Assembly (NCBI GenBank): GCA_029953675.1
Contig: JAMWBK010000013.1
Span: forward strand, 806,001 to 870,000
Source: Rhodosorus marinus CCMP1338
Lineage: Eukaryota > Plantae > Rhodophyta
Direction of reading: 5' to 3'
DNA: 64,000 bases
Every line of letters starts with the position of its first letter. Position 1 is the stretch's first letter. The notes beneath the pieces were generated by a model. The model worked only from the letters and a program-made list of their open reading frames with translations, was not told the DNA's origin and ran no database searches. Shown here in pieces: positions 6,811-36,329 of the stretch. The translations under genes and the position numbers were made by a program.

Positions 6811-6862
6811 ACGAATGGTTTAATCGGAGGCTGAAAAAAAAAACCCCGAGGGGAAAAAAAGA

Positions 6863-9800
6863 CTAAGCGCGGCGAAGTACTCGCGCCTCCAACATCAAAG
6901 CGGCATTCATGCGCCACAGCAGGAAACTTAAGCGGGTAAACAACGATTGAAGACGGTCAGGGCGTTCGCGGAACAACTCCCGAAGCCAGCGAGAACCAAC
7001 AGAGTCCATGAACCCAAAGCACTCAATGATCGGGGGTACCAAGCGATGTGCTAGTGCCGAAGCACGAACACCAAGGGAAGAGTAAGCCCCCGCGTATTTG
7101 ATCTCTTTGCGGCGTCTCATGCTGGCAGCGGCAGATCCACGGCGCTCCCCCGCAGCCGGGAGATAACGACTAGCTTGAGGGTTAGGAACAGCAAGATCAA
7201 CGTATGTGGTACGGCGGCTGTCGTCACAGGTGATCACCAGGTCGGCTACACGGCGTTCATCATTTTGAAAGTCCGCGACGGGTAAAGGTTTCTCACGTTC
7301 GATTTCCAGACCGGCTTGCCGGACTATAGGCCGAAATTCCCGGTATAACAGGTTCAAGATCCGTGTATGGCGGCGGGTTCGCTCGAACCCGCCGCCATAC
7401 ACGGATCCGAGCACCTTTCACCGCCGGGCAACTAGCGAGCAGGTGGGCGCCAAAATCTGCGTTGTCTTCAGTCTGAGAGCAGAGAGGGCACGACGAACCC
7501 ATCTCGTACGGCCAAGGGGGCTGATGTAAGCCGAGGTATAAGCGCAGTGAAGTACGCACTTCGAAATCCGACAGTGTGAGTGGCGGAAAGGCTGGTACGG
7601 TCATGAGCCACTGAGAGCTAATAACCCCTCCAAGACTACGTAGGCGGGCGCGAGCGCGAGGAGTCGGCCATATGCAGCACGGTGCAAGTCCCAAGAAAGG
7701 ATATTTTGCAGCGCATCCGTGCGTGCTTGAGCTCGGCTCCCAACGCGCTGGGAATCATCAGGAGGATCAACTGGAACTTCTTCTTCTGCGGCAACCACTG
7801 GGTCAATCTCCCCTAGAACAGGTTCAGGCGCAGGACGAATCCCCGGGGCGGAGCCTCGAGAGCGGTCAAATACAGCTCGCCAGTCAGGAAGACGGGGTTG
7901 AACGGTTTCGGGGAGACTAGTACAGGAATTCAGGGCGGTTTGGAGCTCCAGAAACAAGTCTTGGGCGCTTTCCGGTACGCTGGGAAGCAAGACACCCCGC
8001 GAGAGGCTCGCCATCAAATTGCGGAACTTCGAGATACCCAAGCTGCTCAAAGTGGGAAGTGCGGTTCCCCAGGCCCCTACTGCGGCTGCAGGTTGGACCA
8101 CAACACGATTGCAGAGGCCCAGTCCCCCCAATCGCAATGGGAGGCCTACCTGGGCGCGCACAACATCACAGGTGGGTCGCGGCAGAGCGCTCAGCTCTTC
8201 ATCGAGAAAATACCCCAGGTCACGGAAACTTTCAGCATCCGCACGAGTGGCCAACCACCGGCCCCAATGAGTTGGAAGTGAGCGAAGCCAATAGGTTAAC
8301 CGCTGACTGCAACAATACCGAAACAGCAACAACGCGCACTGGAGAAAGCCCGGAGGGAGCCGTCGAAGCTCTGCAACCAGCTGTCTGTGCTTACCGAGGA
8401 GCTGCAGCAACTCGCCTTCAACGAAGGACGGCGACCCGTAGGGGATGCCTAAGTGGACAAAACCATCCGGTCTCCAAATATCCTGGAACGACGCAGGTAC
8501 CTGCTGCTCTTGTGCAGCTACACCTCCCCAGTAGAACGATTTGTGATGATTAACCTCCAAGTCAACCCGCGAAGCCAAGGAGCGGAGACGATCATAAGCG
8601 AGCGCTAGAGTATCAGGGGGCCCCAGGAGGCACACGTCGTCGTGGTATGCAACCGTACGAACCTGCGGGAATTAGGAGCGAAGACAAAGCAAGACGAGTT
8701 GTAGTCCTCAGGCATGTAGGAAAGGGGACAAGGGATCTCCCTGTTGTACCCCTGTGCGCGCCGCAAACGTGTGTGAGGAAGCGCCAAGGGTGTCATAGGT
8801 AGCCCCACGACCAAGCGGAGAATAAAGTCTACTAACAAAGGGAAAGCCTACAGGGAAGACTTCGCGCACCACGTGCATGAGAGCCGGACGAGAGACGCGG
8901 TTGAACGCATTGGTAAGATCTACAGAGAGGAGCCCAGAATCTGGTGAGTACGCCATTTCCGAACGGAGTAAAACAGACAACAACTCACAGCCACCACGAT
9001 AGCCCACGCCTAACTGCACGTGCCCAAAGAAACGGCGGGATTCGGGAACCAGGATTTTCACTAACCATCGCGCCGCCAATTTGCGGACCACCTCAACCAG
9101 GCCAATAGGGCGAATAGCAGGGCTCGAGGCCGTGTGGCCGGGCTTCGAAAACAGACACAACTGCGAACGCCCGACCAAGAACCACGCACACTCACACAGG
9201 GGATCACCATTCACAAGCGCTTCGACCACCCACGCCAACGCCTTCAAACCTTCATCACTTAAGAAACGGAGATATTCCACCCGCAGCCCCGAGGGCCCTG
9301 GGGAACGGCCCTTCGGAGCATCATGAACCAACTCACGCACCGCCTCCAGATTGACCACTAACCGCGCACTGGGATGTGGCGCGGCGCGGTACTCTTCCAA
9401 CACTGATTCAAACGAGGAGTCCCAAGGGGAGCCTTCCGAGGGAAAGAGCAAACGGAGCGGTGAAGAAAGATCATCGGAGTATGGAACCACAGGTTGCCGC
9501 TGCTGGAGGATCCCGGCTGCCCGCCGCAGATCACCGCCTGCCACCGCGTGACGCGCCCGATTCTGTCGAGAAGACCTAAAAGCTGAGGGAGCACTAGGAG
9601 AAAAGGAAGAGAGAGAAGCGAAATAAAGACGTTCGAGGTCCTCAAAGTCGCCGGAAAGGAACATTTGCAGTTTTCGGCGAGGGTGGACCCGGCGAGGATG
9701 TGGGTTGAGGGGGACGGTAGAGGAGGTGAGCACGAGGCGGGGAAAAAAGAACAAGAGTTCCCAGCGAAGAGAGCAGTGAGGGTTCGCGGCGACCTGCTGC

Positions 9801-11544: not shown

Positions 11545-13400
11545 AGAACTGATCTTGGCATCCAATATCAAAGCACGATCTAGGGATGCATTTTTGGAGG
11601 ATGAATGAATCAGTCCTCCAAAAATGGACTCCTAGATACTCTTGGAACAGGAGGTGAGTCGACCATCGTTGCTCCGTCGGCTCGTATGTTTCTGGTGAGC
11701 GTTCTGCCGAAACCTCCCGCTCTAGTTCAGTCCATACCTGTATGGCCATTCATCTTCATTGTTCCGGAAGGTGTTTCTCCATGACGAGTAAAACGCAATG
11801 GGTTGGACGCGCTTTCGCGTAGCGAAACCCAACCCCCCCAAGCGGCAGGGCAGAGCGATTTGGTCCGAGATCAGCTCTGCGTACTCGTCGTCCTCTACAG
11901 CTGTCGTAGCGAGGCCTCCGAATAGAATTTCCTGATGATATCTGGTCATCACATCGGCCTCGCGTGCCAGGTTCTTCCAAACTCGTATGCGAGGCATCGT
12001 AGAATATGTTCTCATAGTCTCATAGTCCAGGTGCGTTTCGTAACCCCAAGTCTTGTTAAGTTTGCTGACCGAGTTGAAATCCCAGTACATGTCTCGGAAA
12101 CGTGCTGATGGAATCTATGAAAAGTGCAGCCCGTAGATAAGAAACATCTAGACACAACCGTATGGACTCTGATATTACTTAGAGTTTGGAGGAAACCCTA
12201 CGAGACCCATATTGTTGGCATACTATTCAGGGATACTCCAAGACAACAATATATAAAAGCATTGTCTGCTGCACAGCTGGCCAGATCTGTGCATCGTCGC
12301 GAGCAATACAACGGAGGCTCGGACCAGAAACCCCGCCGCGGATCTTGGCACTGGCTACCCTGCAACAACCGCGAGAAATATCTCTTCGAAGCGCACCGGG
12401 CGAGACTGCAGCTTGGACTAATGGTTCAATACAACAAACCCTCTCTCGAGAGGCACACCATTGTGCATTCCAAAGCTTGGTCACCAACCCACGAATCTCC
12501 CCTGAAAACCGAGCTCGAATACGTGGTCCGCCGCGGGATCCGGGTCGGGAGTCTGGCTGCGTGAAATACCAACGCTGACACCAAAAAAATTGAGTGCGGT
12601 TGAGATGCAGGTAAACGTTCGACTACTGCAGGGGCTGCCAATTCCGGGATTGCGGACCACCGAGAAGTGCACTAGTTGCCGGAGTAAACACGGAAGGACT
12701 GGGGTACAACGGTTTCATCACTGCCCAACATCAACTGGACTGTTGCAACGTAGGCACGACGAAATCTGCAGAGAGTTGGCACGGTGGCTGAGGCGATGGA
12801 ACTTCATGGACGTAGAGCAAGAACCTGAGGGGTACTTGGAGAACTACGGACTGCGACCTGATATCGTTGCTAGGCATCCGAGGACCATACAAAGGTATGC
12901 GCTGGATGTGACTGTGGTGTCACCATTGCAGGGAAAATATTTGCGGCCGAGCCAAGATGATAGCGGATACGCGGCGAGAGCTGCGGAGAAGTGGAAAATC
13001 GCTCACTACTAGGAAGCGATGGTGATCGAGAAAGCGGATGACAAGTTCATCCCGATAGCGATAGAGACGTTTGGGCGTACAGGGCAAATGGCACAAGAGT
13101 TCCTCCGCGACAGCTGCAAACACTTACTGCACAGGAGTGAGGAGCTGAGAGATGTGAGATCGCAGATGAACCGGCAACTATGGCGAGGTAATGCAGAGAT
13201 AGCACTAGGCGCTTTGCGCGGACCAGTTGGAGAATCCGCTGGTGCCTGTTTTTTCTTTTGAACGTAGCATGAGACCCCGGCAGCGGGGTTCCAGTAAGTT
13301 TCTCCCTAGATAGGATTAGACGTAGTGTTGCGCTGCAGTAGGCAGCTGCCCAGTAAAGCTTGCGCTTACGTACAAGTCTTGGGTACGTAGTCCCCATAGC
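11545..13400 (+). mobile_element. Family D RLE-type non-LTR retrotransposon 3' half with an inverted 5' segment (11545-~12095 on the - strand)
   Basis: The - strand segment encodes the thumb motif QIALPCRLGGLG. The + strand encodes CTSC..HHC, RRHDEI, LRPDIV, YALDVTV and FIPIAIETFG, with internal stops. Confidence 0.85.
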
Positions 13401-16029
13401 CTAGTCCTAGTCGTCGGACCGTGCTCGATGTGCAGCTTGACCAGACCATTTCCTGACAGATAAGCCACAGCAAGAAACCTAAGCGGGTAAACAACGAGGA
13501 CATAAGGGCTCGGCATGTTTCATTTATTTGCTACGTCTCATCATCGCAGCGGTAGTTCCACAGCGCTCTCCAGCAGCCGGCAAATAACGTCAGCCCGATG
13601 GTACAGGAAAAGCAACGTATTTAGTTCGACGGCTATCGTCACACTTGAACACGTGTAAGCTTACGACTTTACCTGGGCTTGCCGCAACCCCCTTGGCCTG
13701 TTGAGCGGGATGCTAGAGGCGCATTGTGCGGGGCCAATGTGCAGCGGGGTGATTATGGTGCGCATCTGTTGTTGTCTTGTGCGGAGGTTCAAGGGGCCCG
13801 GACCAGACGCCATACGCGGCTCAACCGCTTGCTTTTCCGCTACCTTCGTTCTCAATCGCTCGGTACGGGCCGAGAAGTGGAGTATGAGGTCCCTCTGGCC
13901 GTGGCATCGGAAATTGCTGATGAGGGTGACGCCCCAGCTGTACAGCGGGTGGCGGATTTCGTTGTGACTGACCTTAATGATGATCCGTTTATTCAGAGGC
14001 TAACTACCCTGAGAAGCGAGAGACAAGACGGTGATGCCGATCTCGAACTTCGTGTAAGCTTACGACTTTGCCTGGGCTTGCCGCAACCCCCTTGGCCTAT
14101 TGAGCAGGATTCTAGATGCGCATTGTGCCGGGCCAATGTGCCGTGGGGTGATTATGGTGCGCATCTGTAGGCGTCTTGTGCGGTGGTTCAAGGGGCCCGG
14201 ACCAGACGCCATACGCGGCTCAACCGCTTGCTTTTCCGCTACCTTCGTTCTCAATCGCTCGGTACGGACCGAGAAGTGGAGTATGAGGTCCCTCTGGCGG
14301 TGGCATCGGAAATTGCTGATGAGAGTGACGCCCCAGCGGTACAGCGGGTAGCGGATCTCGTTGTGACTGACCTCTATGCGTTTCGCAGTGAGTACATTGA
14401 CCTCTCCTTCCCTTGTCCTCAGGCGACCAGGTACCTGCCTGCGTCGGCTCGGCGTCGAGGAGCTGCAGCTCGGTCCATGCGGCAAGTTAAAGATTCGCAG
14501 TACGCGGCAGCGATGTCAAACCCTACCTTTCGCGATTCGGCGGTGACATACCGGTTCGTCCCCCTCATTATTGAGTGCTTTGGCTTGATAGATAGTGTAG
14601 GTTCTCGCTGGCTTCGAGCTCTGTTTCGCAACGACCCAGGGCGTTTAGATAGTCTGCTCACGGAGCCTTCTTTGACCCTGTGGTGCTCCAAATCTGCTTT
14701 GTTTGTGGACGCGCGTCATCAGCGTCTTGTTTCTCGCTTCTCAGGGTAGTTAGCCTCTGAATAAACGGATCTAAGATCACGCGCGTCCACAAACAAAGCA
14801 GAATTGGAGCGCCACAGGGTCATAGAAAGCTCCGTGAGCAGACTATCTAGGCGCCCTGGGTCGTTGCGAAACAGAGCTCGCAGCCAGCGAGAACCTACAC
14901 TATCTATCAAGCCAAAGTACTCAATGATGAGGGGGACGAACCGGTATGTCACCGCCGAATCGCGAAAGGTAGGGTTTGACATCGCTGCCGCGTACTGCGA
15001 ATCTTTAACTTGCCGCATGGACCGAGCTGCAGCTCCTCGACGCCGAGCCGACGCAGGCAGGTACCTGGTCGCCTGAGGACAAGGGATGGAGAGGTCAATG
15101 TACTCACTGCGAAGCGCATTGAGGTCAGTCACAACGAGATCCACCACCCGCTGTACCGCTGGGGCGTCACTCTCATCAGCAATTTCCGATGCCACCGCCA
15201 AAAGGACCTCATACTCCACTTCTCGGTCTGTACCGAACGATTGAGAACGAAGGTAGCGGAAAAGCACAGAGCAAGCGGTTGAGCCGCGGATGGCGTCTGC
15301 TCCGGGCCCCTTGAACCTCCGCACAAGACGCCAACGATGCGCACCATAATCACCCCACGGCACATTGGCCCCGCACAATGCGCATCTAGAATCCCGCTCA
15401 ACAGGCCAAGAGAGTTGCGGCAAACCCAGGTAAAGTCGCCCCTCACTGCGCGTCGCAGTGAGTGCATTGACCTCTCCATCTCTTGTCCTCAGGCGACCAG
15501 GTACCTGCCTGCGTCGGCTCGGCGTCGAGGAGCTGCAGCTCGGTCCATGCGGCAAGTTAAAGATTCGCAGTACGCGGCAGCGATGTCAAAACCTACCTTG
15601 CGCGATTCGGCGGTGACATATTGGTCCGTCCCCGTCATTATTGAGTGCTTTGGCTTGATAGATAGTGTAGGTTCCCGCTGGCTGCGAGCTCTGTTTCGTA
15701 ACGACCCAGGGCGTTTAGATAGTCTGCTCACGGAGCTTTCTTTGACCCTTTGGCGCTCCAAATTTGCTTTGTTTGTGGACGCCCGTCATCAGCGTCTTGT
15801 CTCTCGCTTCTCAGGGTAGTTAGCCTCTGAATAAACGGATCTTCTTCTTCTTCTTGAAGACGAGGTCTGCCTAGGCGATCGTTATTTTGGCAATGAGTGC
15901 ATTTAGTGAAAGACACGGGCGTGTCTGGTTCAATTTCAAGACCGATTTGCGAAGGTCAGGTCGAGTCAGTGCTTCATCCGATGCGAAGTCCAATCGACAA
16001 GAACTAAGTTTGAATGAATTAAAGTAAAG

Positions 16030-16640
16030 TGATGGTGGTTTTCTGGCTTCATTAGCATAGCCTAAAGCTCTGCGCAAACCGTGGAAAGAAACTAAGAACT
16101 AGGTAGGGAAGCGTGCAAACCCAGGCGCCGATGGCGCGCCTCGGCAAGCATGCTGCTCGAATATCGCCGCAGAGAGACACTTAAACGCCGCAAAAGTTCC
16201 AAGTATTCAACACGATGCTCAGCGAAACATTTCCGCAACCACTCCAAACCCACCTTCTCCACGTCACCAAAGCTGTCCACAATGAAACGCTGGAACCGGT
16301 GGGAGCAACCTTCAGCGCGAGGCAGACTGACCACACCCTCGGCATACCGTCGTTCCTTCACGCGGCGAAGGGCCGAAGCAGCTGCTCCCCGGCGGCGGGC
16401 GGCAACGGTGAGATGCGCGCTTGCCACAGGGCATGTAATCGCGAGGTCAACATGTTGAGCGTCTGGCAGCAGCATCGGAGACGAGAAAATCTGCGATACA
16501 GCGGGGCGGTGCCCTATCCGAGACCGATCTGGGTAGTTCCGATTCCACCTCAACCGTATCTTGAAGCGAGTGTGACGCCTCGTACGAAGACCTCTCAGCA
16601 GTCCGCATGAACCTAAAAAGTGGTAACCGCAAGCATCGAT
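16030..16640 (-). mobile_element. Family A 3' fragment
   Basis: VDLAITCPVASAHL..FQRFIVDSFG..HRRLGLHASLPSS* and the A-type 3' UTR. Confidence 0.85.
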
Positions 16641-16650
16641 CTGACTCTCA

Positions 16651-16682
<32 letters not shown>

Positions 16683-19600
16683 GTTTATCAGAGCCTAACT
16701 ACCCTGAGAAGCGAGAAACAAAACGCTGATGACGCGCGTCGAACAATAAAGCGATGATGATCCGTTTATTCAGAGGCTAACTACCCTGAGAAGCGAGAGC
16801 CAAGACGCTGATGACGCGCGTCCACAAACAAAGCAGATTTGGAGCGCCAAAGGGTCAAAGAAAGCTCCGTGAGCAGACTATCTAAACGCCCTGGGTCATG
16901 GCGAAACAGAGCTCGCAGCCAGCGAGAACCTACACTATCTATCAAGCCAAAGCACTCAATAATGAGGGGGACGAACCGGTATGTCACCGCCGAATCGCGA
17001 AAGATAGAGTTTGACATCGCTGCCGCGTACTGCGAATCTTTAACTTGCCGCATGGACCGAGCTGCAGCTCCTCGACGCCGAGCCGACGCAGGCAGGTACC
17101 TGGTCGCCTGAGGACAAGGGATGGAGAGGTCAATGTACTCACTGCGAAGCGCATTGAGGTCAGTCACAACGAGATCCGCCAGCCGCTGTACGGTTGGGCC
17201 GTCACTCTCGTCAGCAATTGCCGATGCCACCGCCAGAGGTCCCTCTGGCGGTGGCATCGGGAATTGCTATCAGGTCCCTCATACTCCACCTCTCGCTCCG
17301 TACCGAGCGATTGAGAACGAAGGTAGCGGAAAAGCAAGCGGTTGAGCCGCGTATGGCGTCTGGTCCGGGCCTCTTGAACCTCCGCACAAGACGCCAACAA
17401 ATGCGCACCATAATCGCTCGTCATCAGCGTCTTGTCTCTCGCTTCTCAGGGTAGTTAGCCTCTGAATAAACGGATCATCACCATAATCACCCCACGGCAC
17501 ATTGGCCCCCCACAATCCGCGGGTAAAATCCCGCTCAACAGGCCAAGGGGGTTGCGGCAAGCCCAGGTAAAGTCGTAAGCTTACACGAAGCTCGAGATCG
17601 GTAAGCGCCAACCGCGGATACGCAGGTATGACCGTGAAGAAGCGGGAGCTGAGACTCCCCCCCCAAGCCGCGCAGGCGAGCAAAAGTTGACGCCGAGCAC
17701 GAAGATTCACGGAGCTTTCTTTGACCCTGTGGCGCCCCAATTCTGCTTTGTTTGTGGACGCGCGTCATCAGCGGCTTGTCTCTCGCTTCTCAGGGTAGTT
17801 AGCCTCTGAATAAATGGATCATCAAGGTAAACTCAGAAGGGTGGCATACGTGTCCCGATGTATGTCCCACGAAAGGGTTTTTTTTGGATTACATCGGTCC
17901 TCGAAGGGGCTCCGGCCCCTTCGAGCTCCGGCCGACCGGGAAACGCCCTCCTCTGGCGGTCTCGACGGCACAGCCACGGCGTCAATCTCCTCGGCAGCTT
18001 CTACACCATTTCCAACACACGGTGCTTGCAGCAGAGACTCCAGATTGCTGGCCACCGAGTGAGTGAAGAACTGCGGCCCAGCAATCGCACCGAGCCTGGG
18101 TACCACTCGGCAGGGCGGTACATTGTTGAAAAACGGCCTCCAGTTCCGCAAAAAAACCCCCGAAGCAGTGGGGCGAGAGTCCCGTCCAGCGAGCTTCCTG
18201 CTTTCTTTCCGAGCCCAGGTAGCTTTGAGGACTGGCGTTCCCGCCTTTTCTCTTGGTTTGAAGGTTTTGTTGGGCGTTTTCCTTCTGGGGATATGCCTCT
18301 TTGCCCTCGTTCGCCCCCAGTCTCTCTCCTTCATCGTTTGCGCAGAAGCGTTTCTTTTGGATTTCCTGCTTATGGAGATGGCCGACCATCCTCAAGCAGC
18401 ACTTGCTTGGAAGCTTTTGTTTGTTTTTCCTCGGCTAGTGCTCACGGTCTCCCAGGGGTGCGATGCATATCCAATTAGACGCAAAGTTCAGTCTTCTCTA
18501 GCGGGGGACTTTGCTTTCTTAGAATGTTTATACCTCGTTAGTTCCTCTTCTTCCTCCTGCTTGCTTGCTCCGTTTATTCAGAGGCTAACTACCCTGAGAA
18601 GCGAGAGAAAAGACGCTGATGACGCGCGTCCACAAACAAAGCAGAATTGGAGCGCCACAGTGTCTCCAATTCTGCTTTGTTTGTGGACTGTTGAGTGGAC
18701 TTCGGGTTGGGCGGCTGGACGGGACTCTCGCCCAACGGCTCGGGGGTTTTTTTGCGGAACTGGAGGCCGCCTTTTTAATAATGTACCGCCCTGCCGAGTG
18801 GTACCCAGGCTCGTTGCGATTCCTGGGGGGCAGTTCGTGACTCCCTCGGTGGCCCAGCGTTCGGGAGTCTCTGCTGCAGCACCGTGTGTTGGAAATGGTG
18901 TAGAAACTGCCGAGGATGTTGACGCCGTGGCTGTGCCGTTGAGACGGCCAGAGGAGGGCGTTCCCGGTTGGGTCCGGCCCCTTCGAGGACCGAGTTAATC
19001 CAAAAAAACCCCTTCGTGGGACATACATCGGCACTCGTATGCCATCCTTCTGAGTTTACCTTCGTGCTCGGCGTCGATTTTAGCTCGCCTGCGCGGTTTC
19101 GGGGGGAGTCTCAGCTCCCGTCTCTTCACGGTCATACCTGCGCATCCGCGGTTGGCGCTTACCGATCTCGAACTTCGTGTAAGCTTACGACTTTACCTGG
19201 GTATGCCGCAACCCCCTTGGCCTGTGGAGCGGGATTCTAGATGCGCATTGTGCGGGGCTAATGTGCCGTGGGGTGATTATGGTGCGCATCTGTTGGCGTC
19301 TTGTGCGGAGGTTCAAGAGGCCCGGACCAGACGCCATACGCGGCTCAACCGCTTGCTTTTCCGCTACCTTCGTTCTCAATCGCTCGGTACGGACCGAGAA
19401 GTGGAGTATGAGGTCCTTCTGGCGGTGGCATCGGAAATTGCTGATGAGAGTGACGCCCCAACGGTACAGCGGGTGGCGGAACTCGTTGTGACTGACCTCA
19501 ATGCGCGTCGCAGTGAGTACATTGACCTCTCCATCCCTTGTCCTCAGACGACCAGGTACCTGCCTGCGTCGGCTCGACGTCGAGGAGCTGCAGCTCGGTC

Positions 19601-20024
19601 CATGCGGCAAGTTAAAGATTCGCAGTACGCGGCAGCGATGTCAAACCCTACCTTTCGCGATTCGGCGGTGACATACCGGTTCGACCCCCTCATTATTGAG
19701 TGCTTTGACCAAAACGCCCTAGTCCGGCCTACTGGCTCGCTCGAGCTCGATCGCATGAGTGATCAGTTCGCAACCCCTGGAAAATCCCACCCGTACCTGC
19801 CAAGGCGCCATAAAAGCGGTGACTCGCTGGCGCACGCGCTTGCATAGCCACCTCCCGCCGAGCTTCCGTAGAGTCTCGACCATGCCGATCTGCCGGAGAC
19901 GCAGGTGTGCCGGCTCGTGGTCGGGTTTCGTTAGCAAGCAAAGCTGTTGCCCGTCGCAGATGGTCCCGAGGGGCATACGCACCCCCCGCACCCTGGAACA
20001 GCGTATTCAGGATCTTTGCCTTAA

Positions 20025-23000
20025 ATCCATTTATTCAGAGGCTAACTACCCTGAGAAGCGAGAGACAAGACGCTGATGACGCGCGTCCACAAAGCATAGT
20101 TGGAGCACCACAGGGTCAAAGAAAGTTCCGTGAGCAGACTATCTAAACGCCCTGGGTCGTTGCGAAACAGAGCTCGCAGCCAGCGAGAACCTACACTATC
20201 TATCAAGCCAAAGCACTCAATAATGAGGGGGACGAACCGGTATGTCACCGCCGAATCGCGAAAGGTAGGGTTTGACATCGCTGCCGCGTACTGCGAATCT
20301 TTAACTTGCCGCATGGACCGAGCTGCAGCTCCTCGACGTCGAGCCGACGCAGGCAGGTACCTGGTCGTCTGAGGACAAGGGATGGAGAGGTCAATGTACT
20401 CACTGCGACGCGCATTGAGGTCAGTCACAACGAGTTCCGCCACCCGCTGTACCGTTGGGGCGTCACTCTCATCAGCAATTTCCGATGCCACTGCCAGAAG
20501 GACCTCATACTCCACTTCTCGGTCCGTACCGAGCGATTGAGTACGAAGGTAGCGGAAAAGCAAGTGATTGAGCCGCGCGCGCGTCTGGTCCGGGCCTCTT
20601 GAACCTCCGCACAAGACGCCAACAGATGCGCACCATAATCACCCCACGGCACATTGGCCCCGCACAATGCGCATCTAGAATCCTGCTCAACAGGCCAAGG
20701 GGGTTGCGGCATACCCACTTAAAGTCGTAAGCTTACACGAAGTTCGAGATCGGTAAGCGCCAACCGCGGATACGCAGGTATGACCGTGAAGAGACGGGAG
20801 CTGAGACCCCCCCCGAAACCGCGCAGGCGAGCTAAAATCGACGCCGAGCACGAAGGTAAACTCAGAAGGATGGCATACGAGTGCCGATGTATGTCCCACG
20901 AAGGGTTTTTTGTGGATTAACTCGGTCCTCGAAGGGGCCGGACCCAACCGGGAAACGCCCTCCTCTGGCCGTCTCAACGGCACAGCCACGGCGTCAACAT
21001 CCTCGGCGGTTTCTACACCATTTCCAACACACGGTGCTGCAGCAGAGACTCCCGAACGCTGGCCACCGAGGGAGTCAAGAACTGCCCCCCAGGAATCGCA
21101 ACGAGCCACTCGGCACGGCGGTACATTGTTGAAAAGGCGGCCTCCAGTTCCGCAAAAAACCCCCCGAGCCGTTGGGCGAGAGTCCCGTCCAGCCGCCCAA
21201 CCCGAAGTCCATTCAACAAACCACTCACATGCGGATCACACTCCGTAGACCATGTACTAAGCGCATTGGCCCACGAACTCACCACAGCCGCCGGCTGGAT
21301 CGCCGCGTAAGATCCCACAGCCAGCCCGCCCAACCGCACGGGCAACGCGATCTGCCGGTGAAGGACGTCCTTTTCTGCATCCCCGAAAACAGATAGCTCA
21401 GCATCCATCAGCGTGCCTAGCACGTCCCTCGCTCGTCGGTCTGCGCGGAGCGCCAGCCAAGACCCCCACTCGGAGGATAGCTGCCGCAAAAAATAGGTCA
21501 GCCTCTGGCACGCGCTGAACCGGAAGATGAGCAGAGCGGTCTGGAGGTACCCTTCTGGGAGACTGCACAGCTCAGCCAGGAGCTCATCATGATGACTCAG
21601 GAGCGCGGAGAGGCTGCGTTCAACAAATATCGGGGTGCCTACGGGGACACCGAACAGAAGGAAGCCCTCAGCTCGCCGAATTTCTCGGAACCTGGATGGA
21701 ACCGCGTCCGCGGTGCAGTGAGACCACCCCCCCCCCAGAAGTCGCACTTGGCATGGTTGATACGCAGCCCCACCAAGGAAGCCACCTCGCCGAGAAAATC
21801 ATAGGCCGGCACCAGATCGTCGGGAGTGCCAAGAAGCGTCACATCGTCATGGAAGGCGACTGCACGGACCCGCGGGAACTGATGTTTCAGCCGCAACAGC
21901 ACCAGTTGCAATCCACAGGCGTGCAGGAACGGCCCTAAGGGATCGCCCTGCTGCACACCCGTATGAGCCGCAAAGGTGTGGCTCTCGGCACCCAAGGTGA
22001 CAAATCGGGGCCCGTTCGGCGCTTCACCATATACGCGGCGTAAGAACGGGAAGCCAGAGGGGGAAAGCTGACGAACTACCTCAAGCGCGTGTGCTCGAGA
22101 CACACTGTTAAACGCGTTGGCGAAATCCACAGAAAGCGTGCCCAAGGGCTCATCGCGGAGACCGTCCAGCTGCAGGATACGCGTTATAAGTTTACAGCCA
22201 CCTGAATAGCCGACACCGACCTGGGTCAACTCAAAAAAAACCCTGGCCTCCCTAGTGAGCTGACGCGATAGAAAGCGGCTCGCCAGCTTCCGCAATGCTT
22301 CGCACATCCCGATTGGCCGAAGGGAAGGCGTCTGGTCGGAATGTCCAGGTTTGGGCAAGAGGACCAGTTGGGAGCGCGACAATAGTGCCCAGGCCTCTCC
22401 GCAAAAATCGTCCCCATTGACAAGACCCTCCAGTACCCGCGCAAGGGCGTCCAGCCCTTCTTCACCCAACCAGTGAAAAAGTTCGACCCGGAGTCCTGAG
22501 GGACCAGGTGCACGACCTTTCCGGGCGGACCGGAGCAGAGCCAGAACCTCATCCGGCCGAACAAGCAACCGACCCCTACCGCGTGAGGAATCGACAAAAG
22601 GATGTAAGACACGCTGGAACTCAGAGTTCCAACTCACGTCGCGCGCAGGGAACAACGCGGCGACTGGATCAGCCAGGTCAGTCCGATACGGCTCGACTGA
22701 AGCGCCTTGCGGGAGGATGGCCGCCCCACGCCGAATATCCCCCTGTGCCACTGCTGCCTTTTCCCGTACCTGCCTACGGGAACGAGAAGAAGGTGAAGTC
22801 CCGCACGAAGTGGATCTCGTTGTGACTGACCTCAATGCGCGTAGCAGTGAGTACATTGACCACTCCATCCCTTGTCCTCAGGCGACCAGGTACCTGCCTG
22901 CGTCGGCTCGACGTCGAGGAGCTGCAGCTCGGTCCATGCGGCAAGTTAAAGATTCGCAGTACGCGGCAGCGATGTCAAACCCTACCTTTCGCGATTCGAC

Positions 23001-24600
23001 AGTGACATACGGGTTCGTCCCCTCATTATTGAACGCTTTGGCTTGATAGATAGTGTAGGTTCTCGCTGGCTGCGAGCTCTGTTTCGCAACGACCCAGGGC
23101 GTTTAGATAGTCTGCTCACGGAGCTTTTTTTGACCCTGTGGCGCTCCAAATCTGTTTTGTTTGTGGACGCGCGTCATCAGCGTCTTGTCTCTCGCTTCTC
23201 AGGGTAGTTAGCCTCTGAATAAACGGATCAAGTGGAAGATGCGACACTAGCGAGGTATAAAGATTCTAAGAAAGCAAAGTCCCCCGCTAGAAAAGACTGA
23301 ACTTTGCGCTAATTGGACATGCATCGCGCCCCTGGGAGACCGTGAGCACTAGCCGAGGAAAAACAAACAAAAGCTTCCAAGCAAGTGCTGGTTGAGGATG
23401 GTCGGCCACCTCCATAAGCAGGAAATCCAAAAGAAACGCTTCTGCGCAAACGGTGAAGGAGAGAGACTGGGGGCGAACGAGCCCTCGCAAAGAGGGATAC
23501 CCCCAGAAGGAAAACGCCCAACAAAACCTTCGAACCAAGAGAAAAGGCGAGAACGCCAGTCCTCAAAGCTACCTGGGCTCGGAAAGAAAGCAGGAAGCTC
23601 GCAACGTTCCCTAAAAGACTAAGATATCCTGCTCCCTCACCATGGAGGAAGCGTCTACGAGATGCGAATCCGCAACGGAATCAGAAGAATTTCCCCCCGC
23701 AACTGGGGCCAAGAAGGGGCCTTGTGCGGAGGGGCACACAAAGAGGAGAGGGATGCATAGATAGCCCCTAAGGAGCCGGAGACCCTCCCCCGGACGCCAA
23801 AGGGCGAAGGGGTGCTCGGCTCAATGGCGAGCGGGTCCATCTCTGGATCGTAATTTACATCCATTGAGGGTAGTTCCCCCACGTCGTCACAAGGCTCCGC
23901 ACCGGCAGAAAGACGCCCAGCGGGAAACACCTGAGCAAAGTCAGGATGATTCTCCAAAAGCGAAGTTTCCGAGGCGAGGAAATCTTGGACCGCAGCATGG
24001 AGGAAACCCCTATTTGGGAGCCGATCTAGCAGGTTTTTCTGAACCCTTGAAAGCCGTTCAAAATGGGCCGAAACCGCCAAGGCAGAATGTCCTCTGCGCG
24101 AGCGCCAAGGAGATCCGAAGGGGCGAGGGATTCCGCAGAGAAACGATCAAAATCAAGCATTAAAGAAACACGGGCGCCTGTCAAAACCTTATTCGCTAAA
24201 ACAGGTCTCTGCGCAGGAGGCGCTTTCAACAAAGTAGATAGGATTTGGTGCGCAGTATCTGTCACCAAGAAGCAAGCATGGGGTCCCGAAAAATCAACGT
24301 AGAGAAAATCGCGGGGCGACGCGCCGAGACACGAGGCCATCGTGTCACGGAAATCGCGAACAGGAATGCGGGCCCATTAGCGCGAGGAGAGCTGGGGCCG
24401 CACGTTGGCCATCACAACCCAACGGAGAGGAGATATGGTCCGTTTAACAGAGTCAACGGCAGGCTCAGGAGGGAATGTACGTACCAGGGCCTCCGCGCGG
24501 GCCTCGACGGACCCACGACGGAGCACTTAGGAGTAGGAAGGCCGCACCGGGCGGGTAGCGGCGGCAGGGGGCACAGGACCAGACACAGAAGAGTCGGCCC
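20025..24600 (-). mobile_element. Family B long copy (partial ORF1 + disrupted RT-RLE ORF2), interrupted by an opposite-strand B insertion at 22815-23229
   Basis: ORF1 block RDFLYVDFSGPHACFLV. RT motifs GRAPGPSG, VDFANAFNSVSR, GVQQGDPLGP, AFHDD and QIALPVRLGGL. RLE domain and B terminus at ~20025. Frameshifts present. Confidence 0.88.
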
Positions 24601-24811
24601 CCTCATTGTTGAGGCCTTTGGCTTGATAGATAGTGTAGGTTCTCTCTGGCTGCGAGCCCTGTTTCGCAACGACCCAGGGCGTTTAGATAGTCTGCTCACG
24701 GAGCTTTCTTTGACCCTGTAGCGCTCCAATTCTGTTTTGTTTGTGGACGCGCGTCATCAGCGTCTTGTCTCTCGCTTCTCAGGGTAGTTAGCCGCTGAAT
24801 AAATGGATCTA

Positions 24812-27690
24812 AGGCAAAGATCCTGAAGACGCTGTTCCGGGGTGCAGGGGGTGCGTATGCCCCTCGGGACCATCTGCGACGGGCAACAGCTTTGCTTGCT
24901 AACGAAACCCAACCACGAGCCGGCACACCTGCGTCTCCGGCCGATCGGCATGGTCGAGAGTCTACGGAAGCTCGGCGGGAGGTGGCTATGCAAGCGCCTA
25001 CGCCAGCGAGTCACCGCTTTTATGGCGCCTTGGCAGGTGGGGGTGGGATTTTCCAGGGGTTGCGAACTGAGCACTCATGCGATCGAGCTCGAGCGAGCCA
25101 GTAGGCCGGACTGGGGCGTTTTGGTGGTTGACTTCCGCAACGCGTTCAAAAGCGTCTCGCGGACGCCTGCCTTGGAGGTGATTCGAAGGGCATTCCCGGA
25201 GGCGTGGCCGTTCCTATCCGGTATTTACGGAGTAGGGAGCCTCCCTTACTTGACGACGCAGGGCTCTGTTTTCGCAGCACGTACTGGCGTTCAACAGGGT
25301 GATCCTTGTGGGCCTGTACTTTACGCCTATGCCTTGCAGCTGGTGCTCCAGCTCCGTTTATTCAGAGGCTAGCTACCCTGAGAAGCGAGAGACAAGACGC
25401 TGATGACGCGCGTCCACAAACAAAGCAGAATTGGAGCGCCACAGGGTCAAAGAAGGCTCCGTGAGCAGACTATCCAAACGCCCTCAGTCGTTGCGAAACA
25501 GAGCTCGCAGCCAGCGAGAACCTACACTGTCTATCAAGCCAAAGCACTCAATAATGAAGGGGACGAACCGGTATGTCACCGCCTAATCGCGAAAGGTAGG
25601 GTTTGACATCGCTGCCGCGTACTGCGAATCTTTCACTTGCCGCATGGACCGAGCTGCAGCTCCTCGACGTTGAGCCGACGCAGGCAGGTACCTGGTGGCC
25701 TGGAGACAAGGGATGGGGAGGTCAATGTACTCACTGCGACGCGCATTGAGGTCAGTCACAACGAGATCCGCCACCCGCTGTACCGCAGGGGCGTCACTCT
25801 CATCAGCAATTTCCAGCGACTGGCGGCTGAGGTGCCGGAGCTTCGCATCTGTGCTTACCATGACGACGTGGCGTTGCTGGGCACCCCTGAGCACTTGGCT
25901 CGGGGATTGACCCAAATCAAAGGAATCGCACATGGAGTAGGTCTAACCGTGGAACCCGAAAAATGCCGTTTTCTCGGCCCGCGGGCTCCCTGCAACCTAG
26001 TCTCTGAGCCTTTGGTGAACGTCCGGGGCTCGAGCACCATGGCGTCGGTTTGGGGAATGACAACTTTGTCCAAGACTCTTGCGAACGAGTTTTAGCACGC
26101 CATAAGCAGCTCAACGACGCTGCTTTTGAGAGCGCCTACCGGACAGCATGCTCCAATCGGCTTGCCTGCTCTCCCGCTTTTGTGCCGGCCCCCGACTGAA
26201 TTACTGAATGCGACGCCTTCCCTCGCACTGGGGCTCCTGAATGTCAGCCAAGGCGGACGAGGCGATGCTGAAGCACTGGGGAACGCTTTTGGATGAACCC
26301 CTGGATGTGGAAGCGGCTCCTGACGGGGACCTAATTCGTGGCCAGATTGCCCTACCTTTACGATTAGGCGGATTTGGAGTCGCCGACCGGTGGACTCGTA
26401 CGCTCGCCTGCGGCGGTCGCTCCTCCGCATCGCACCCTGGTGAGTTTTCGGATGCGAAGTGCTTGCCTTTTGGCTAGAGCACTGACTAGCGAAGACCCCA
26501 TGGCCCTTCCGCCACCGCTTTTGAGTATCTACGATGCTCTGCAACAGGCGTTAAGTAGAAGATCCGTTTATTCAGAAACGGATGAGTAAGTGCAACGCCG
26601 TGCCGGACGAGAGCCGATCCAGATTTCGCTCCTGGAAGGAGCTGTTATGGGGACGAACTGAGGCACTCGAAGACTCTCCCATCGACAGAGTACTCGCGGA
26701 CGAGGGGAAAGCTAGCCCCGGGTCTCCGGTTGCCGATTACCCTGGTCTGAGCCGATTGTGGAGCTCGCGCACTGATGTGATTCAACATAGCCTCACCTGT
26801 GGCCAACAAAGTGCCGCTCACACAATCTTGCTCAACTCTCCCCTCACTCCGTCTACCACCGCTCGCCTCCGCGGCATGGGAGGCCATCTATCACATTTGT
26901 GGTTAACGACGATGATGATCCGTTTCGACCCTGCCGCCATCACTGGGTCACCGCCTAGATGCCTTCCAGTTTAGCTCTGCCGTGCGGATCTACCTGGGTT
27001 TGCCACAAGCTCCGTGGCACTCTAATCGGCCGTCTTTCTGTCAGGGATGTGAGAGTCGGAACGATGCTTGTGGTTACCATTTCTTAGGTTCACGCGGACT
27101 GTTGAGAGGTCTTCGTACGAGGCGTCACACTCGCTTCAAGTACATTCTCAGTGAATATTTGACTCGGGTAGGGCATACGGTTGAGGTGGAATCGGAACTA
27201 CCCAGATCGGTCTGATAGGGCACCGCCCCGCTGTATCGCAGATCTCCTCGTCTCCGATGCTGCCGCCAGACGCTCAGCATATGCTGACCTCGCGATTACA
27301 TGCCCTGTGGCAAGCGCCCCTCTCACGGCTGCCGCCCGCCGCCGGGGAGCAGCTGCTTCGGCCCTTCGCCGCGTGAAGGAACGACGGTATGCTGAGAGTG
27401 TGGCCAGTCTGCCTCGCGCTGAAGGTCGCTGCCACCGGTTCCAGCGTTTCATTGTGGAAAGCTTTGGTCACGTGGAGAAGGCGGGTTTGGAGTGGTTTCG
27501 GAAATGTTTCACTGAGCATCCTGTTGAATACTTGGAACTTTTGCGGCGTTTAAGTGTCTCTCTGTGGCGATATTCGAGCAGCATGCTTGCCGAGGCGCGC
27601 CATCGGTGCCTGGGTTTGCACGCTTCCCTACCTAGTTCTTAGTTCCTTTTCACGGTTTGCGTAGCGCTTTAGGCTATGCCAATAAAGCCA
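24812..27690 (+). mobile_element. Family A long 5'-truncated copy (disrupted RT-RLE) carrying nested family B insertions
   Basis: LRPIG, QVGVG..GCE, VDFRNAFKSVSR, GVQQGDPCGP, AYHDD, QIALPLRLGGFG, CQGC, RHTRF and HRCLGLHASLPSS*. B inserts at 25353-25811, 26557-26586 and ~26908-26925. Confidence 0.88.
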
Positions 27691-27935
27691 GCTCATCGCC
27701 TGACACCTCTGGTCATTGAGTGCTTTGGGTTTATGGATTCCGCTGGTCTCGTTGGCCTCGGGAATTGTTCCGCGAAGGCCCTGACCGTCTGTCCTCGTTG
27801 TTTACCCGTCTAAGTTTCTTGCTGTAGCGTATGAACGCTGCTTTGATGTTGGAGGGCCTCGATCTTCACCGCGCTTAGTCTTTTTTTTTTCGCTCGGGGT
27901 GTTTTTCGTTCAGCCTCCGATTAAATAAATTCATC
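27690..27935 (+). mobile_element. Family C 3' stub
   Basis: Matches the C terminus (..GAACGCTGCTTTGATGTTGGAGG..CAGCCTCCGATTAAA). Confidence 0.75.
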
Positions 27936-31673: not shown

Positions 31674-34258
31674 TGAATGGTTTAATCGGAGGCTGAAAAA
31701 AAACCCCGAGGGGAAAAAAAGACTAAGCGCGGCGAAGTACTCGCGCCTCCAACATCAAAGCGGCATTCATGCGCCACAGCAGGAAACTTAAGCGGGTAAA
31801 CAACGATTGAAGACGGTCAGGGCGTTCGCGGAACAACTCCCGAAGCCAGCGAGAACCAACAGAGTCCATGAACCCAAAGCACTCAATGATCAGGGGTACC
31901 AAGCGATGTGCTAGTGCCGAAGCACGAACACCAGGGGAAGACAAAGCCCCCGCGTATTTGATCTTTTTGCGGCGTCTCATGCTGGCGGCGGCAGATCCAC
32001 GGCGCTCCCCCGCAGCCGGGAGATAACGACTAGCTTGAGGGTTAGGAACAGCAAGATCAACGTATGTGGTACGGCGGCTGTCGTCACAGGTGATCACCAG
32101 GTCGGCTACACGGCGTTCATCATTTTGAAAGTCCGCGACGGGTAAAGGTTTCTCACGTTCGATTTCCAGACCGGCTTGCCGGACTATAGGCCGAAGTTCC
32201 CGGTATAACAGGTTCAAGATCCGTGTATGGCGGCGGGTTCGAGCACCTTTCACCGCCGGGCAACTAGCGAGCAGGTGGGCGCCAAAATCTGCGTTGTCTT
32301 CAGTCTGAGAGCAGAGAGGGCACGACGAACCCATCTCGTACGGCCAAGGGGGCTGATGTAAGCCGAGGTATAAGCGCAGTGAAGTACGCACTTCGAAATC
32401 CGACAGTGTGAGTGGCGGAAAGGCTGGTACGGTCATGAGCCACTGAGAGCTAATAACCCCTCCAAGACTACGTAGGCGGGCGCGAGCGCGAGAAGATGAG
32501 ACCATCTGCGCGAGGAGTCGGCCATATGCAGCACGGTGCAAAGTCCCAAGAAAGGATATTTTGCAGCGCATCCGTGCGTGCTTGAGCTCGGCTCCCAGCG
32601 CGCTGGGAATCATCAGGAGGATCAACTGGAACTTCTTCTTCTGCGGCAACCACTGGGTCAATCTCCCCTAGAACAGGTTCAGGCGCAGGACGAATCCCCG
32701 GGGCGGAGCCTCGAGAGCGGTCAAATACAGCTCGCCAGTCAGGAAGACGGGGTTGAACGGTTTCGGGGAGACTAGTACAGGAATTCAGGGCGGTTTGGAG
32801 CTCCAGAAACAAGTCTTGGGCGCTTTCCGGTACGCTGGGAAGCAAGACACCCCGCGAGAGGCTCGCCATCAAATTGCGGAACTTCGAGATACCCAAGCTG
32901 CTCAAAGTGGGAAGTGCGGTTCCCCAGGCCCCTACTGCGGCTGCAGGTTGGACCACAACACGATTGCAGAGGCCCAGTCCCCCAATCGCAATGGGAGGCC
33001 TACCTGGGCGCGCACAACATCACAGGTGGGTCGCGGCAGAGCGCTCAGCTCTTCATCGAGAAAATACCCCAGGTCACGGAAACTTTCAGCATCCGCACGA
33101 GTGGCCAACCACCGGCCCCAATGAGTTGGAAGTGAGCGAAGCCAATAGGTTAACCGCTGACTGCAACAATACCGAAACAGCAACAACGAGCACTGGAGAA
33201 AGCCCGGAGGTAGCCGACGAAGCTCTGCAACCAGCTGTCTGTGCTTACCGAGGAGCTGCAGCAACTCGCCTTCAACGAAGGACGGCGACCCGTAGGGGAT
33301 GCCTAAGTGGACAAAACCATCCGGTCTCCAAATATCCTGGAACGACGCAGGTACATGCTGCTCTTGTGCAGCTACACCTCCCCAGTAGAACGATTTGTGA
33401 TGATTAACCTCCAGGTCAACCCGCGAAGCCAAGGAGCGGAGACGATCATAAGCGAGTGCTAGAGTATCAGGGGGCCCCAGGAGGCACACGTCGTCGTGGT
33501 ATGCAACCGTACGAACCTGCGGGAATTCGGAGCGAAGACAAAGCAAGACGAGTTGTAGTCCACAGGCATGTAGGAAAGGGGACAAGGGATCACCCTGTTG
33601 TAGCCCTGTGCGCGCCGCAAACGTGTGTGAGGAAGCGCCAAGGGTGTCATAGGTAGCCCCACGACCAAGCGGAGAATAAAGTCTACTAACAAAGGGAAAG
33701 CCTACAGGGAAGACTTCGCGCACCACGTGCATGAGAGCCGGACGAGAGACGCGGTTGAACGCATTGGTAAAATCTACAGAGAGGAGCCCAGAATCTGGGG
33801 AGTACGCCATTTCCGAACGGAGTAAAACAGACAACAACTCACAGCCACCACGATAGCCCACGCCTAACTGCACGTGCCCAAAGAAACGGCGGGATTCGGG
33901 AACCAGGATTTTCACTAACCATCGCGCCGCCAATTTGCGGACCACCTCAACCAGGCCAATAGGGCGAATAGCAGGGCTCGAGGCCGTGTGGCCGGGCTTC
34001 GAAAGCAGACACAACTGCGAACGCCCGACCAAGAACCACGCACACTCACACAGGGGATCACCATTCACGAGCGCTTCGACCACCCACGCCAACGCCTTCA
34101 AACCTTCATCACTTAAGAAACGGAGATATTCCACCCGCAGCCCCGAGGGCCCTGGGGAACGGCCCTTCGGAGCATCATGAACCAACTCACGCACCGCCTC
34201 CAGATTGACCGCTAACCGCGCACTGGGATGTGGCGCGGCGCGGTACTCTTCGAACACT
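31674..34258 (-). mobile_element. Family C 5'-truncated copy (~2.6 kb) with 7-bp TSD GTATGAA
   Basis: Nearly identical to 6818-9400. RT AYHDD and RLE present, with small frameshifts. GTATGAA at 31667-31673 and 34259-34265. (TTCA)n tail. Confidence 0.92.
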
Positions 34259-36119: not shown

Positions 36120-36329
36120 TGACCCTGAGGAGGAGCCAGCATCCCACGTTCAGGCTGAGTATCCTGCAGCTGGGGTTGAATGAAAATTCCCACACAGAAA
36201 CAATTCGCTGTAATGTTGGATACCCGAGATCGTATGCTCAATAACTTGAACTAGAGTGAATTTTTTAACCAACTGCGCCCGCTTGCTGCAGCCACGTTGC
36301 GCTAGTCTAAGCATATTAAACAAATGCTT

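Follow-up and report, generated by a model that had tools for sequence, protein, structure and literature searches.

A region of 12–14 kb in the genome of the red alga Rhodosorus marinus CCMP1338 is a genuine nest of truncated copies of an R2-like family of long interspersed nuclear elements (LINEs), called here family B, which have inserted into older B copies. The nest lies in a 64-kb window that corresponds to ~806–870 kb of the 1.107-Mb contig JAMWBK010000013.1 (assembly GCA_029953675.1). An exact match to the PAF-acetylhydrolase protein encoded at 46.9 kb places the window there, and a trypanosomatid origin was rejected. The window contains ~35.8 kb of LINE-like DNA, that is, a ~35-kb island of several LINE families, including A, C and B2, a sister family of B. 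With a probability of about three in four, the nest was formed mainly by ordinary target-primed reverse transcription of B, with a preference for B's own sequence and for the neighboring A. Self-nesting is a known kind of behavior; what is unusual here is the strict antisense rule and, likely, a target site carried by the element itself. An earlier note on this DNA had placed a 14-kb nest of B in itself and in A at 13440–27690. The nest turned out to be real, with B in B and in A, but BLAST mapping confines family B DNA to 13652–25822 of the window.

Although CRE-type LINEs account for 9% of the R. marinus genome, very little work has been done on the transposons of red algae, and a full-text literature search turned up no publication on CRE-type retrotransposons of Rhodosorus or of red algae. 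The genome assembly is pseudo-chromosomal and Nanopore-based (PMC10250338). According to its supplementary RepeatMasker tables, CRE/SLACS LINEs occupy 2.82 Mb, or 9.04% of 31.2 Mb, and form ~24 RepeatModeler families, two of which are very young with a Kimura divergence of ~1% (PMC10250338).

Insertions of family B and their target-site duplications

Using a motif scan of the window, we found 11 complete B 3′ termini (...CTCAGGGTAGTTAGCCTCTGAATAAACGGATC), six on the plus strand and five on the minus strand (Table 1). The number of at least 13 termini given before holds if two ultra-short B-end scars (9–16 nt) inside an A copy and a variant terminus at 16684–16752 (−) are counted; this variant belongs to B2 and is 93% identical to contig L003. 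Each B insert keeps the exact 3′ end ...CTGAATAAACGGA(TC), followed by a short variable tail, which is TC, (ATC)1–2, TAA or (TTC)n, and (TGA)10 in the case of B2. The 5′ ends of the 11 termini fall at 11 different B coordinates, with lengths from 61 nt to 4.1 kb. The inserts are flanked by host duplications of 3–10 bp, and their 5′ joins pass through 2–3 nt of microhomology. No direct repeats resembling long terminal repeats (LTRs) bound any B copy. An exact common 3′ end, variable 5′ truncation, target-site duplications (TSDs) and the absence of terminal repeats are the hallmarks of a non-LTR element.

The four TSDs reported previously were correct, as judged by host colinearity or continuity of the reading frame. 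After removal of the insert and one copy of CACCATAATC, the host is gap-free against the B reference. At AAGTGGA, the host frame is open only with one copy kept, and at TCCAGC the reverse transcriptase frame of A (...YAYALQLVLQRLAAEV...AYHDDVALLG) is continuous across the empty site. The fourth, GTATGAA (31667–73 / 34259–65), bounds a 2.58-kb C copy. Further duplications are CCTCAATG, GATGACG, AAG and one of 27 nt. The inverted arms are 92–96% identical, not 100%, and therefore, at the sequence level, the junctions are not chimeric-read artefacts. Thus, the intact 3′ ends, variable 5′ truncation, TSDs, 5′ microhomology and diverged arms bear out the view that genuine retrotransposition, not chimeric assembly, produced these junctions.

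The segment 13652–15841 is a B(+) copy that contains a B(−) copy, which in turn contains a B(+) copy. Level 1 consists of 13652–13979 and 15441–15841, and its halves overlap by 8 nt, which gives the TSD CCTCAATG. In level 2 (13982–14039 and 14775–15438) the overlap is 7 nt and gives the TSD GATGACG with one substitution in each copy; its tail is AT at 13980–81 on the plus strand, and the junction in the B sense reads GGATC-AT-CATTAAGG. Level 3 occupies 14037–14771. Divergence from the local consensus falls inward, being 3.5, 2.3 and 1.9% for levels 1 to 3. Reading 14229–15266 as a 492-nt fold-back palindrome and 13982–14039 as a 57-nt insert was ruled out by the coordinates, which are those of two nested insertions with TSDs.

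Table 1. Termini of family B and parts of the nest (positions in the window; B coordinates refer to the B reference)
Feature	Position	Strand	Remarks
B 3′ termini (motif scan)	ends 14771, 15841, 17476, 17820, 23229, 24809	+	
B 3′ termini (motif scan)	starts 13982, 16759, 18567, 20024, 25351	−	
Level-1 B, left half	13652..13979	+	B 2069–2395; ends in TSD copy CCTTAATG at 13972–13979
Level-2 B, 3′-terminal 57 nt	13982..14039	−	B 2783–2727; TSD copy GATGCCG at 14033–14039
Level-3 B	14037..14771	+	B 2055–2783; antisense in level 2 at recurrent site; tail TAA 14772–74
Level-2 B, 5′ part	14775..15438	−	B 2733–2081; starts with TSD copy GATCACG at 14775–14781
Level-1 B, right half	15441..15855	+	B 2388–2783; TSD copy CCTCACTG 15441–48; 3′ terminus 15841, then (TTC)n tail
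Family A 3′ fragment	16043..16654	−	A 3′ terminus 16043; last in head-to-tail chain B→B2→A
Sister family B2, 3′-terminal ~70 nt	16650..16752	−	(TGA)10 tail, (CAT)n on plus strand
B copy	16759..18190	−	B 2783–1615; contains two micro-inserts in antisense and, at 17238–17271, a 34-nt insertion templated by snap-back
B 3′ end, 61 nt + tail	17416..17478	+	antisense in host; 10-bp TSD CACCATAATC 17406–15 / 17479–88
B 3′ end, 114 nt	17705..17823	+	antisense in host; 3-bp TSD AAG 17702–04 / 17824–26
B 5′-region fragment	18189..18542	+	B5p 992–1348; probably 5′ part of the plus copy continuing at 18683 and 24594
B 3′ end, 98 nt	18567..18688	−	antisense between plus host pieces; 25-nt snap-back hairpin at 5′ end (18665–18688)
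B copy	18683..19707	+	B 1584–2599; last 27 nt (19681–19707) repeated at 24594–24620
Family A, 316 nt	19708..20023	−	joined to B 3′ terminus at same A position as 24809/24810 (96% inverted copy)
Longest B copy, 4.14 kb	20024..24593	−	5′-truncated, frameshifted; RVT_1 in open reading frame 21639–22868, endonuclease-coding (RLE) 3′ part; interrupted 22808–23236
B 3′ end, 418 nt	22808..23236	+	antisense in long copy; 7-bp TSD AAGTGGA 22808–14 / 23230–36
B 3′ 216 nt	24594..24809	+	B 2573–2783; continues plus copy from 19707; abuts A at 24810
Family A copy	24810..27690	+	reverse transcriptase + RLE, frameshifted; hosts B insert and two B-end scars; A 3′ terminus 27690
B 3′ end, ~460 nt	25347..25817	−	antisense in A; 6-bp TSD TCCAGC 25347–52 / 25812–17
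B-terminus scar, 16 nt (26561–26576) + 7-nt snap-back	26561..26583	−	in A; read as an abortive reverse-transcription scar
B-terminus scar, 9 nt + ATCATC tail (26911–25)	26907..26929	−	CGAC/CGAC flanks 26907–10, 26926–29
Family C 3′ fragment	27691..27926	+	directly behind A terminus; head-to-tail chain B→A→C

Orientation and target preference of the inserts

All interior insertions (8–10 of 8–10) are antisense to their host, whatever the absolute orientation of the host; under 50:50 orientation the two-sided P is ~0.008 or lower. An antisense position had been noticed before in the TSD-bounded cases, and the rule is stronger than was stated then. Because every interior insert is antisense, it is always the sense strand of the host that receives the priming (first) nick. 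The sense strands are poor in A (14–19%) and have 2.4-fold more T-rich motifs similar to the nick sites than the opposite strands (56 vs 23).

The insertion sites differ among the B inserts, so B is not strictly site-specific. Four of the five nicks mapped in the 3′ 2.8 kb of B lie 1–11 nt 5′ of one of seven sense-strand GCGTC motifs, and a simple binomial estimate of such proximity by chance is ~1e-5 to 1e-4. The strict nick consensus ^CG is present at only four of nine sites and is weak. One site, GACGCGCGTCATC^AGCGTC, is recurrent. It consists of a 10-bp palindrome followed by ATCA and GCGTC, lies ~50 nt from B's own 3′ end and, in the window, forms the junction of levels 3 and 2 with the TSD GATGACG. 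The same site is reused to the nucleotide in L006 and L007, which, like L001, are transcript contigs from the Joint Genome Institute (JGI) sample 3300017118; L007 even has the same 7-bp TSD. In L007, an antisense host (397–453 and 775 to ~845) is split by a sense B-like copy (454–774), and one tandem (sense) junction is found at the recurrent site. In L006, GATGACGTGCGTCCA and a degenerate antisense coding sequence of the restriction-like endonuclease (RLE) come after a B-like copy in sense orientation. The three inserts at this site have different truncation points (2055, 2473, and 1391 or earlier) and recurrent-site inserts are only 72–86% identical to B, and so the three insertions are independent events. 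Every B fragment of ~60 nt or more carries the recurrent site; therefore, each insertion can seed the next, a mechanism of self-nesting that is in part demonstrated. A candidate reuse of the 1953–1955 site in L001 was rejected, the junction being ~10 nt away.

No B insertion was found in 23.8 kb of other LINE-like DNA in the window, vs ~10 in 12 kb (P at most 5e-4 to 6e-5 for the clustering of B, if insertion is uniform over transposable-element DNA), and two successive insertions of the nest landed in targets of less than 1 kb. Together with the reuse of the site, this upholds the idea of the earlier note that B may target related retroelements: within the window, the preference of B for B and adjacent A DNA is real. 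It is a preference and not a rule, because related transcript contigs also have B- and A-like fragments next to ordinary genes. The term hyperparasitism, used for it before, is not supported: the inserts are dead 3′ fragments of 61–735 nt in dead copies, and nothing is exploited.

Several observations weigh against targeting of this kind. Only one of the ~9 events in the window used the recurrent site, and ~10 intact palindrome copies of the window have no insert, so the preference is loose. No GCGTC is found near the places where A was entered (25347 and the scars). This motif is strand-symmetric (14 vs 15), and the T-rich asymmetry predicts ~60–70% antisense inserts, not 100%. In the JGI sample, B-, B2- and A-like 3′ fragments lie next to zinc-knuckle, octopine-dehydrogenase-like, alpha/beta-hydrolase and PPR genes; these contigs are short transcript assemblies, and such assemblies are biased towards gene-adjacent copies. 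The evidence for targeting comes from the window and a few transcript contigs. When metagenome contigs were scanned for exact matches to the 3′ terminus of B, none was found in a collection without the transcript samples that contain L003. The open reading frame (ORF) flanking L003 has no similarity to anything in the window.

A more specific form of this explanation is tentative. In it, B-type LINEs would be self-homing: the RLE would recognize its own site GACGCGCGTC-ATCA-GCGTC ~50 nt from the 3′ end, cut with a 7-bp stagger and insert the new copy in the opposite orientation. A fresh target would thus be created each time, giving inverted-repeat Russian dolls and a built-in safe haven, and hairpin RNA could restrain the family.

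It is also conceivable, but in our opinion unlikely, that the nest is a passive trap: B would insert approximately at random, and in a compact, gene-dense 31-Mb genome only insertions into dead repeats would survive. Such a trap would agree with the 35-kb island of several LINE families, with the 9% of the genome made up by CRE-type LINEs, with the head-to-tail stacking of A and C, and with B-like fragments beside genes in transcripts. It does not explain why the other 23.8 kb of LINE DNA in the window has no B while 12 kb has ~10 insertions, why two insertions in succession hit targets of less than 1 kb, or why the same nucleotide was reused at independent loci. Strict antisense orientation is not predicted by it either.

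The orientation rule could come from RNA:DNA hybrids. R-loops would form in B copies that are transcribed, or through B RNA in trans, and nicking of the displaced sense strand would give antisense inserts in B specifically; alternatively, sense inserts would be lost by recombination between direct repeats. The position of all 8–10 interior nicks on the host sense strand fits this, the motif asymmetry accounts for only ~70%, and another sample has transcripts (L001, L006, L007) composed of sense and antisense B-like pieces. We nevertheless regard it as quite unlikely, since B also entered A, whose sequence has diverged too far for pairing with B RNA, and since a tandem (sense) junction is present at the recurrent site in L007.

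The B-like sense/antisense composites occupy 379–1342 of L001, 340–960 of L007 and 5–1600 of L006. Thus, such nests are transcribed in a relative and possibly give hairpin RNA.

Rearrangements in the nest and the surrounding island

Not every part of the nest is a simple insertion. Termini 20024 and 24809 join the same A nucleotide (19708–20235 vs 24594–25125), and because the B/A junction is the same, they are one junction by descent and one event, not two. On either side of the block of A(−), 316 nt, and B(−), 4.14 kb, stands one copy of a 27-nt duplication of the B(+) host (19681–19707 / 24594–24620). The block is either an inverted duplication made by template switching or a re-insertion of a B–A chimeric or read-through RNA. 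Three short perfect hairpins (17238–71, 18665–88 and 26577–83) look like snap-back templated repair. A 747-nt patch, present as inverted copies at 18961–19707 and 20209–20954, is 98–99% identical, vs ~95% elsewhere, which suggests gene conversion. At the 98-nt B end (18567–18664), ~1.6 kb of the B(+) host is missing. The scar at 26907..26929 is absent from the other A copy at 5105–5230. The head-to-tail chains B–B2–A (minus) and B–A–C (plus) have no TSDs between their members and fit template jumping or serial insertion at 5′ junctions. Twin priming was ruled out, as the inverted pieces have their own 3′ ends. Part of the alternating orientation pointed out in the earlier note comes from one duplicated junction and from snap-back repair.

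It is very unlikely that the alternation arose mainly by DNA rearrangement of a few copies (fold-back inverted duplications, inversions between inverted repeats, gene conversion). The junction common to 20024 and 24809 with its 27-nt flanking duplication, the nearly identical patch and the three snap-back palindromes are what such rearrangement would leave. However, 10 junctions contain a complete B 3′ terminus, each with its own 5′ truncation point and flanks, six have TSDs and exact host colinearity, and the 492-nt palindrome at 14229–15266 resolves into nested insertions.

If the nest was formed mainly by target-primed reverse transcription, the B endonuclease would prefer the palindrome-containing sequence carried by B fragments of ~60 nt or more, and each insertion would seed the next and flip the orientation. 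Abortive events would leave the 9–16-nt B-end scars and breaks, and the breaks at the three hairpins would be repaired by snap-back templated synthesis. The junction shared by 20024 and 24809 would come from a larger inverted duplication or from one re-inserted B–A chimera, and the chains B–B2–A and B–A–C from end-to-end template jumping by the reverse transcriptase. The antisense rule, the scars and the snap-back repairs would then be a sequence record of failed and successful target-primed reverse transcription. If B carries its own preferred target, this is a compact natural example of a retrotransposon limiting damage in a gene-dense genome; without genome-wide enrichment, it is an ordinary repeat island.

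The island is gene-poor, and its GC content is above that of its flanks. The nesting in existing copies and the prevalence of 3′ ends resemble the LINE Zepp (PMC8226300), and the island could be the centromere of the chromosome, marked by a cluster-forming LINE as by Zepp/ZeppL in green algae. This is highly improbable: genes are found less than 10 kb away on both sides, and CRE-type LINEs amount to 2.8 Mb in 13 chromosomes, far above one 35-kb island per chromosome. An assembly artefact is hardly credible, although palindromic repeats pose difficulties for assemblers and this genome was assembled on the basis of Nanopore reads (PMC10250338), since the arms differ by 4–8%, the TSDs are exact, host reading frames are restored, and the same architecture is found in independent transcript contigs.

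Other LINE families of the window also form stacks. The C copies at 6836–8424 and 31696–33278 are 98–100% identical, so family C is recently active; it is probably one of the published families with a Kimura divergence of ~1%. The 2.58-kb C copy (31674–34258, −) and another C-like 3′ end stand head-to-tail, the copy immediately following the tail of that end. At 6078–6163 and 6705–6840 (−), C-type 3′ ends stand in tandem, with a 47-nt unit at 6082/6129 and termini at 6722 and 6818. The stacked C-type ends have (ATTC)n/(GTTC)n-like tails, and such 3′-end arrays are typical of Zepp too. Between C-type (−) fragments lies a 295-nt B2 3′ fragment (6396–6690, +; 91% to L003), antisense to its neighbors. 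Two paralogous PAF-acetylhydrolase (PF03403) genes, 46891–48198 (+) and 54381–55745 (+), are ~88% identical in DNA and have family C 3′ fragments between them (termini 49712, 51260 and 53991), which suggests a LINE-flanked segmental duplication. A 27-bp tandem repeat at 35375–36238 (~30 units, core 95–97% identical) gives a spurious Pfam match, SBSN_GxHH, on translation. An Aladin-like WD40 gene (57846–59323, +) and a cullin gene (61520–63321, +) each extend over two overlapping or adjacent ORFs, presumably split by short introns. No match to the cullin at E<=1e-30 was obtained by word-based homology search.

Encoded proteins and comparison with known systems

Families A, B and C have ~50% amino-acid identity in the reverse transcriptase. 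Pfam identified RVT_1 in the B ORF 21639–22868 (E 3e-12) and in ORFs of A and C, and the nearest PDB sequences to the reverse transcriptase are L1 ORF2p and R2. In A, B and C, the reverse transcriptase is followed on the 3′ side by a conserved domain with C-x2-C...H-x4-C, RH, ADLVV, YVDL, K-x2-KY and IIE-x-FG; the CCHC, RH, ADLVV, YVDL and K..KY motifs are also conserved in the C-terminal domain of a fourth family. The fourth, divergent RLE domain (12605–13213, +), 25% identical to that of B, lies beside the 5′ end of a C element and indicates a further LINE family in the island. The C-terminal domain of the family C copy is 53% identical to that of the B copy. An AlphaFold2 model was built on the family C domain with a 43-sequence alignment, and it stands in for the B domain; a model from 8 sequences had a predicted local distance difference test score (pLDDT) of 50 and was discarded. 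The C-domain model has a pLDDT of 89 and an alpha-beta-beta-beta-alpha-beta core. When it was compared with the PDB by Foldseek, the top seven matches were all R2 proteins (E 6e-9 to 2e-5, query-normalised template-modelling score 0.51–0.69), and other PD-(D/E)XK nucleases ranked after them. Sequence searches of the RLE domain against the PDB (single sequence, profile, long homologues) were negative or gave chance matches.

A profile search with the C-terminal domain gave 97 representatives. In six of seven long homologues, RVT_1 is upstream and the domain is at the extreme C-terminus, and Pfam found no domain besides RVT_1 in the long homologues. No N-terminal endonuclease of the apurinic/apyrimidinic (AP) type was seen, as Pfam gives only RVT_1 in the B and C ORFs and in six long homologues. 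In the sister family C, whose N-terminal ORF is apparently complete, no C2H2 zinc finger is visible; B is 5′-truncated in the window. The reverse transcriptase and the RLE domain of B each gave just one close relative in word-based homology searches of an index that lacks most of the genome's own transposable-element ORFs. B thus encodes a reverse transcriptase and, C-terminal to it, an endonuclease with a zinc knuckle and, by way of the C-domain model, a PD-(D/E)XK fold. From the motifs of the C-terminal domain, its position after RVT_1 and the match of the model to R2, A, B and C are R2-group (RLE) LINEs.

The CRE label comes solely from the published automated classification (RepeatClassifier LINE/CRE, ~24 families). 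The earlier assignment to the CRE clade agrees with the published RepeatMasker table, but B targets neither spliced-leader (SL) RNA genes nor telomeric repeats. Rfam and tRNA scans of the window found no SL-RNA or other RNA gene, telomeric repeats are present at no junction read, and the targets of B are several positions inside B and A. The 3′-terminal motifs of the families are related: AGCCTCTGAATAAAC in B, where the motif includes AATAAA, CAGCCTCCGATTAAAC in C and GCTATGCCAATAAAGCC in A (e.g., 14740–14771 for B, 6818–6833 for C and 27666–27691 for A). Their similarity suggests a common element in the 3′ untranslated region that the A, B and C reverse transcriptases may recognize.

The machinery closest to that of B is R2. 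Like R2, B has the order reverse transcriptase, zinc knuckle, PD-(D/E)XK endonuclease (the last by way of the C-domain model), has no poly(A) tail, and its insertion leaves a staggered double cut at the target. The R2 reverse transcriptase is capable of end-to-end template jumping, which would explain the head-to-tail chains. R2, however, has one fixed target in 28S ribosomal DNA, whereas B uses many sites with TSDs of 3–10 bp and one merely preferred site inside B. R2 has N-terminal zinc-finger/Myb DNA-binding domains, in contrast to the related C element, in which no N-terminal zinc finger is visible, and sequence similarity of these elements to R2 is limited to the reverse transcriptase.

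L1 twin priming and polymerase-theta end joining produce inverted segments and short hairpin-like duplications at junctions. The 25–34-nt snap-backs at 17238, 18665 and 26577 resemble such polymerase-theta/L1-inversion products. In twin priming, the inverted segment lies immediately upstream of the sense part and belongs to the same insertion, whereas the inverted B pieces have their own complete 3′ ends and TSDs and are therefore separate insertions.

The dominant LINEs of R. marinus bear the CRE/SLACS label in the published RepeatMasker run, that of the clade of the array formers Cnl1, MoTeR/FoTeR of Magnaporthe/Fusarium, CRE1/2, SLACS and CZAR. Dynamic arrays of full and truncated copies are formed by Cnl1 in Cryptococcus (bioRxiv 10.1101/2021.08.11.455996) and by MoTeR in Magnaporthe (PMC3636483). 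The arrays of this clade are subtelomeric or in spliced-leader genes and head-to-tail, whereas the B nest is internal, ~300 kb from the contig end, and antisense-nested.

Zepp has an N-terminal AP-type endonuclease and poly(A) tails. Unlike this L1-clade element, B ends in short tails of the (ATC)n type, and its R2-like endonuclease is C-terminal. In Chlorella, Coccomyxa and Chlamydomonas, new Zepp/ZeppL copies land in existing ones of their own family; 5′-truncated 3′ ends predominate in the clusters, and the DNA around these is free of the family (PMC8226300). B likewise enters existing copies, and its cluster is mostly 3′ ends. Zepp is described as forming tandem arrays, one cluster per chromosome at putative centromeres, whereas B forms antisense Russian dolls, and 2.8 Mb of CRE LINEs argue against single Zepp-type clusters per chromosome. 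If the preferred reading is true, B is a parallel to the green-algal Zepp, but with an R2-type endonuclease, of the class that is being engineered for site-specific gene insertion. Thus, the nest is distinct from the known cases in combining an R2-type endonuclease with internal antisense Russian-doll nesting, a preferred target inside the element and a red-algal host.

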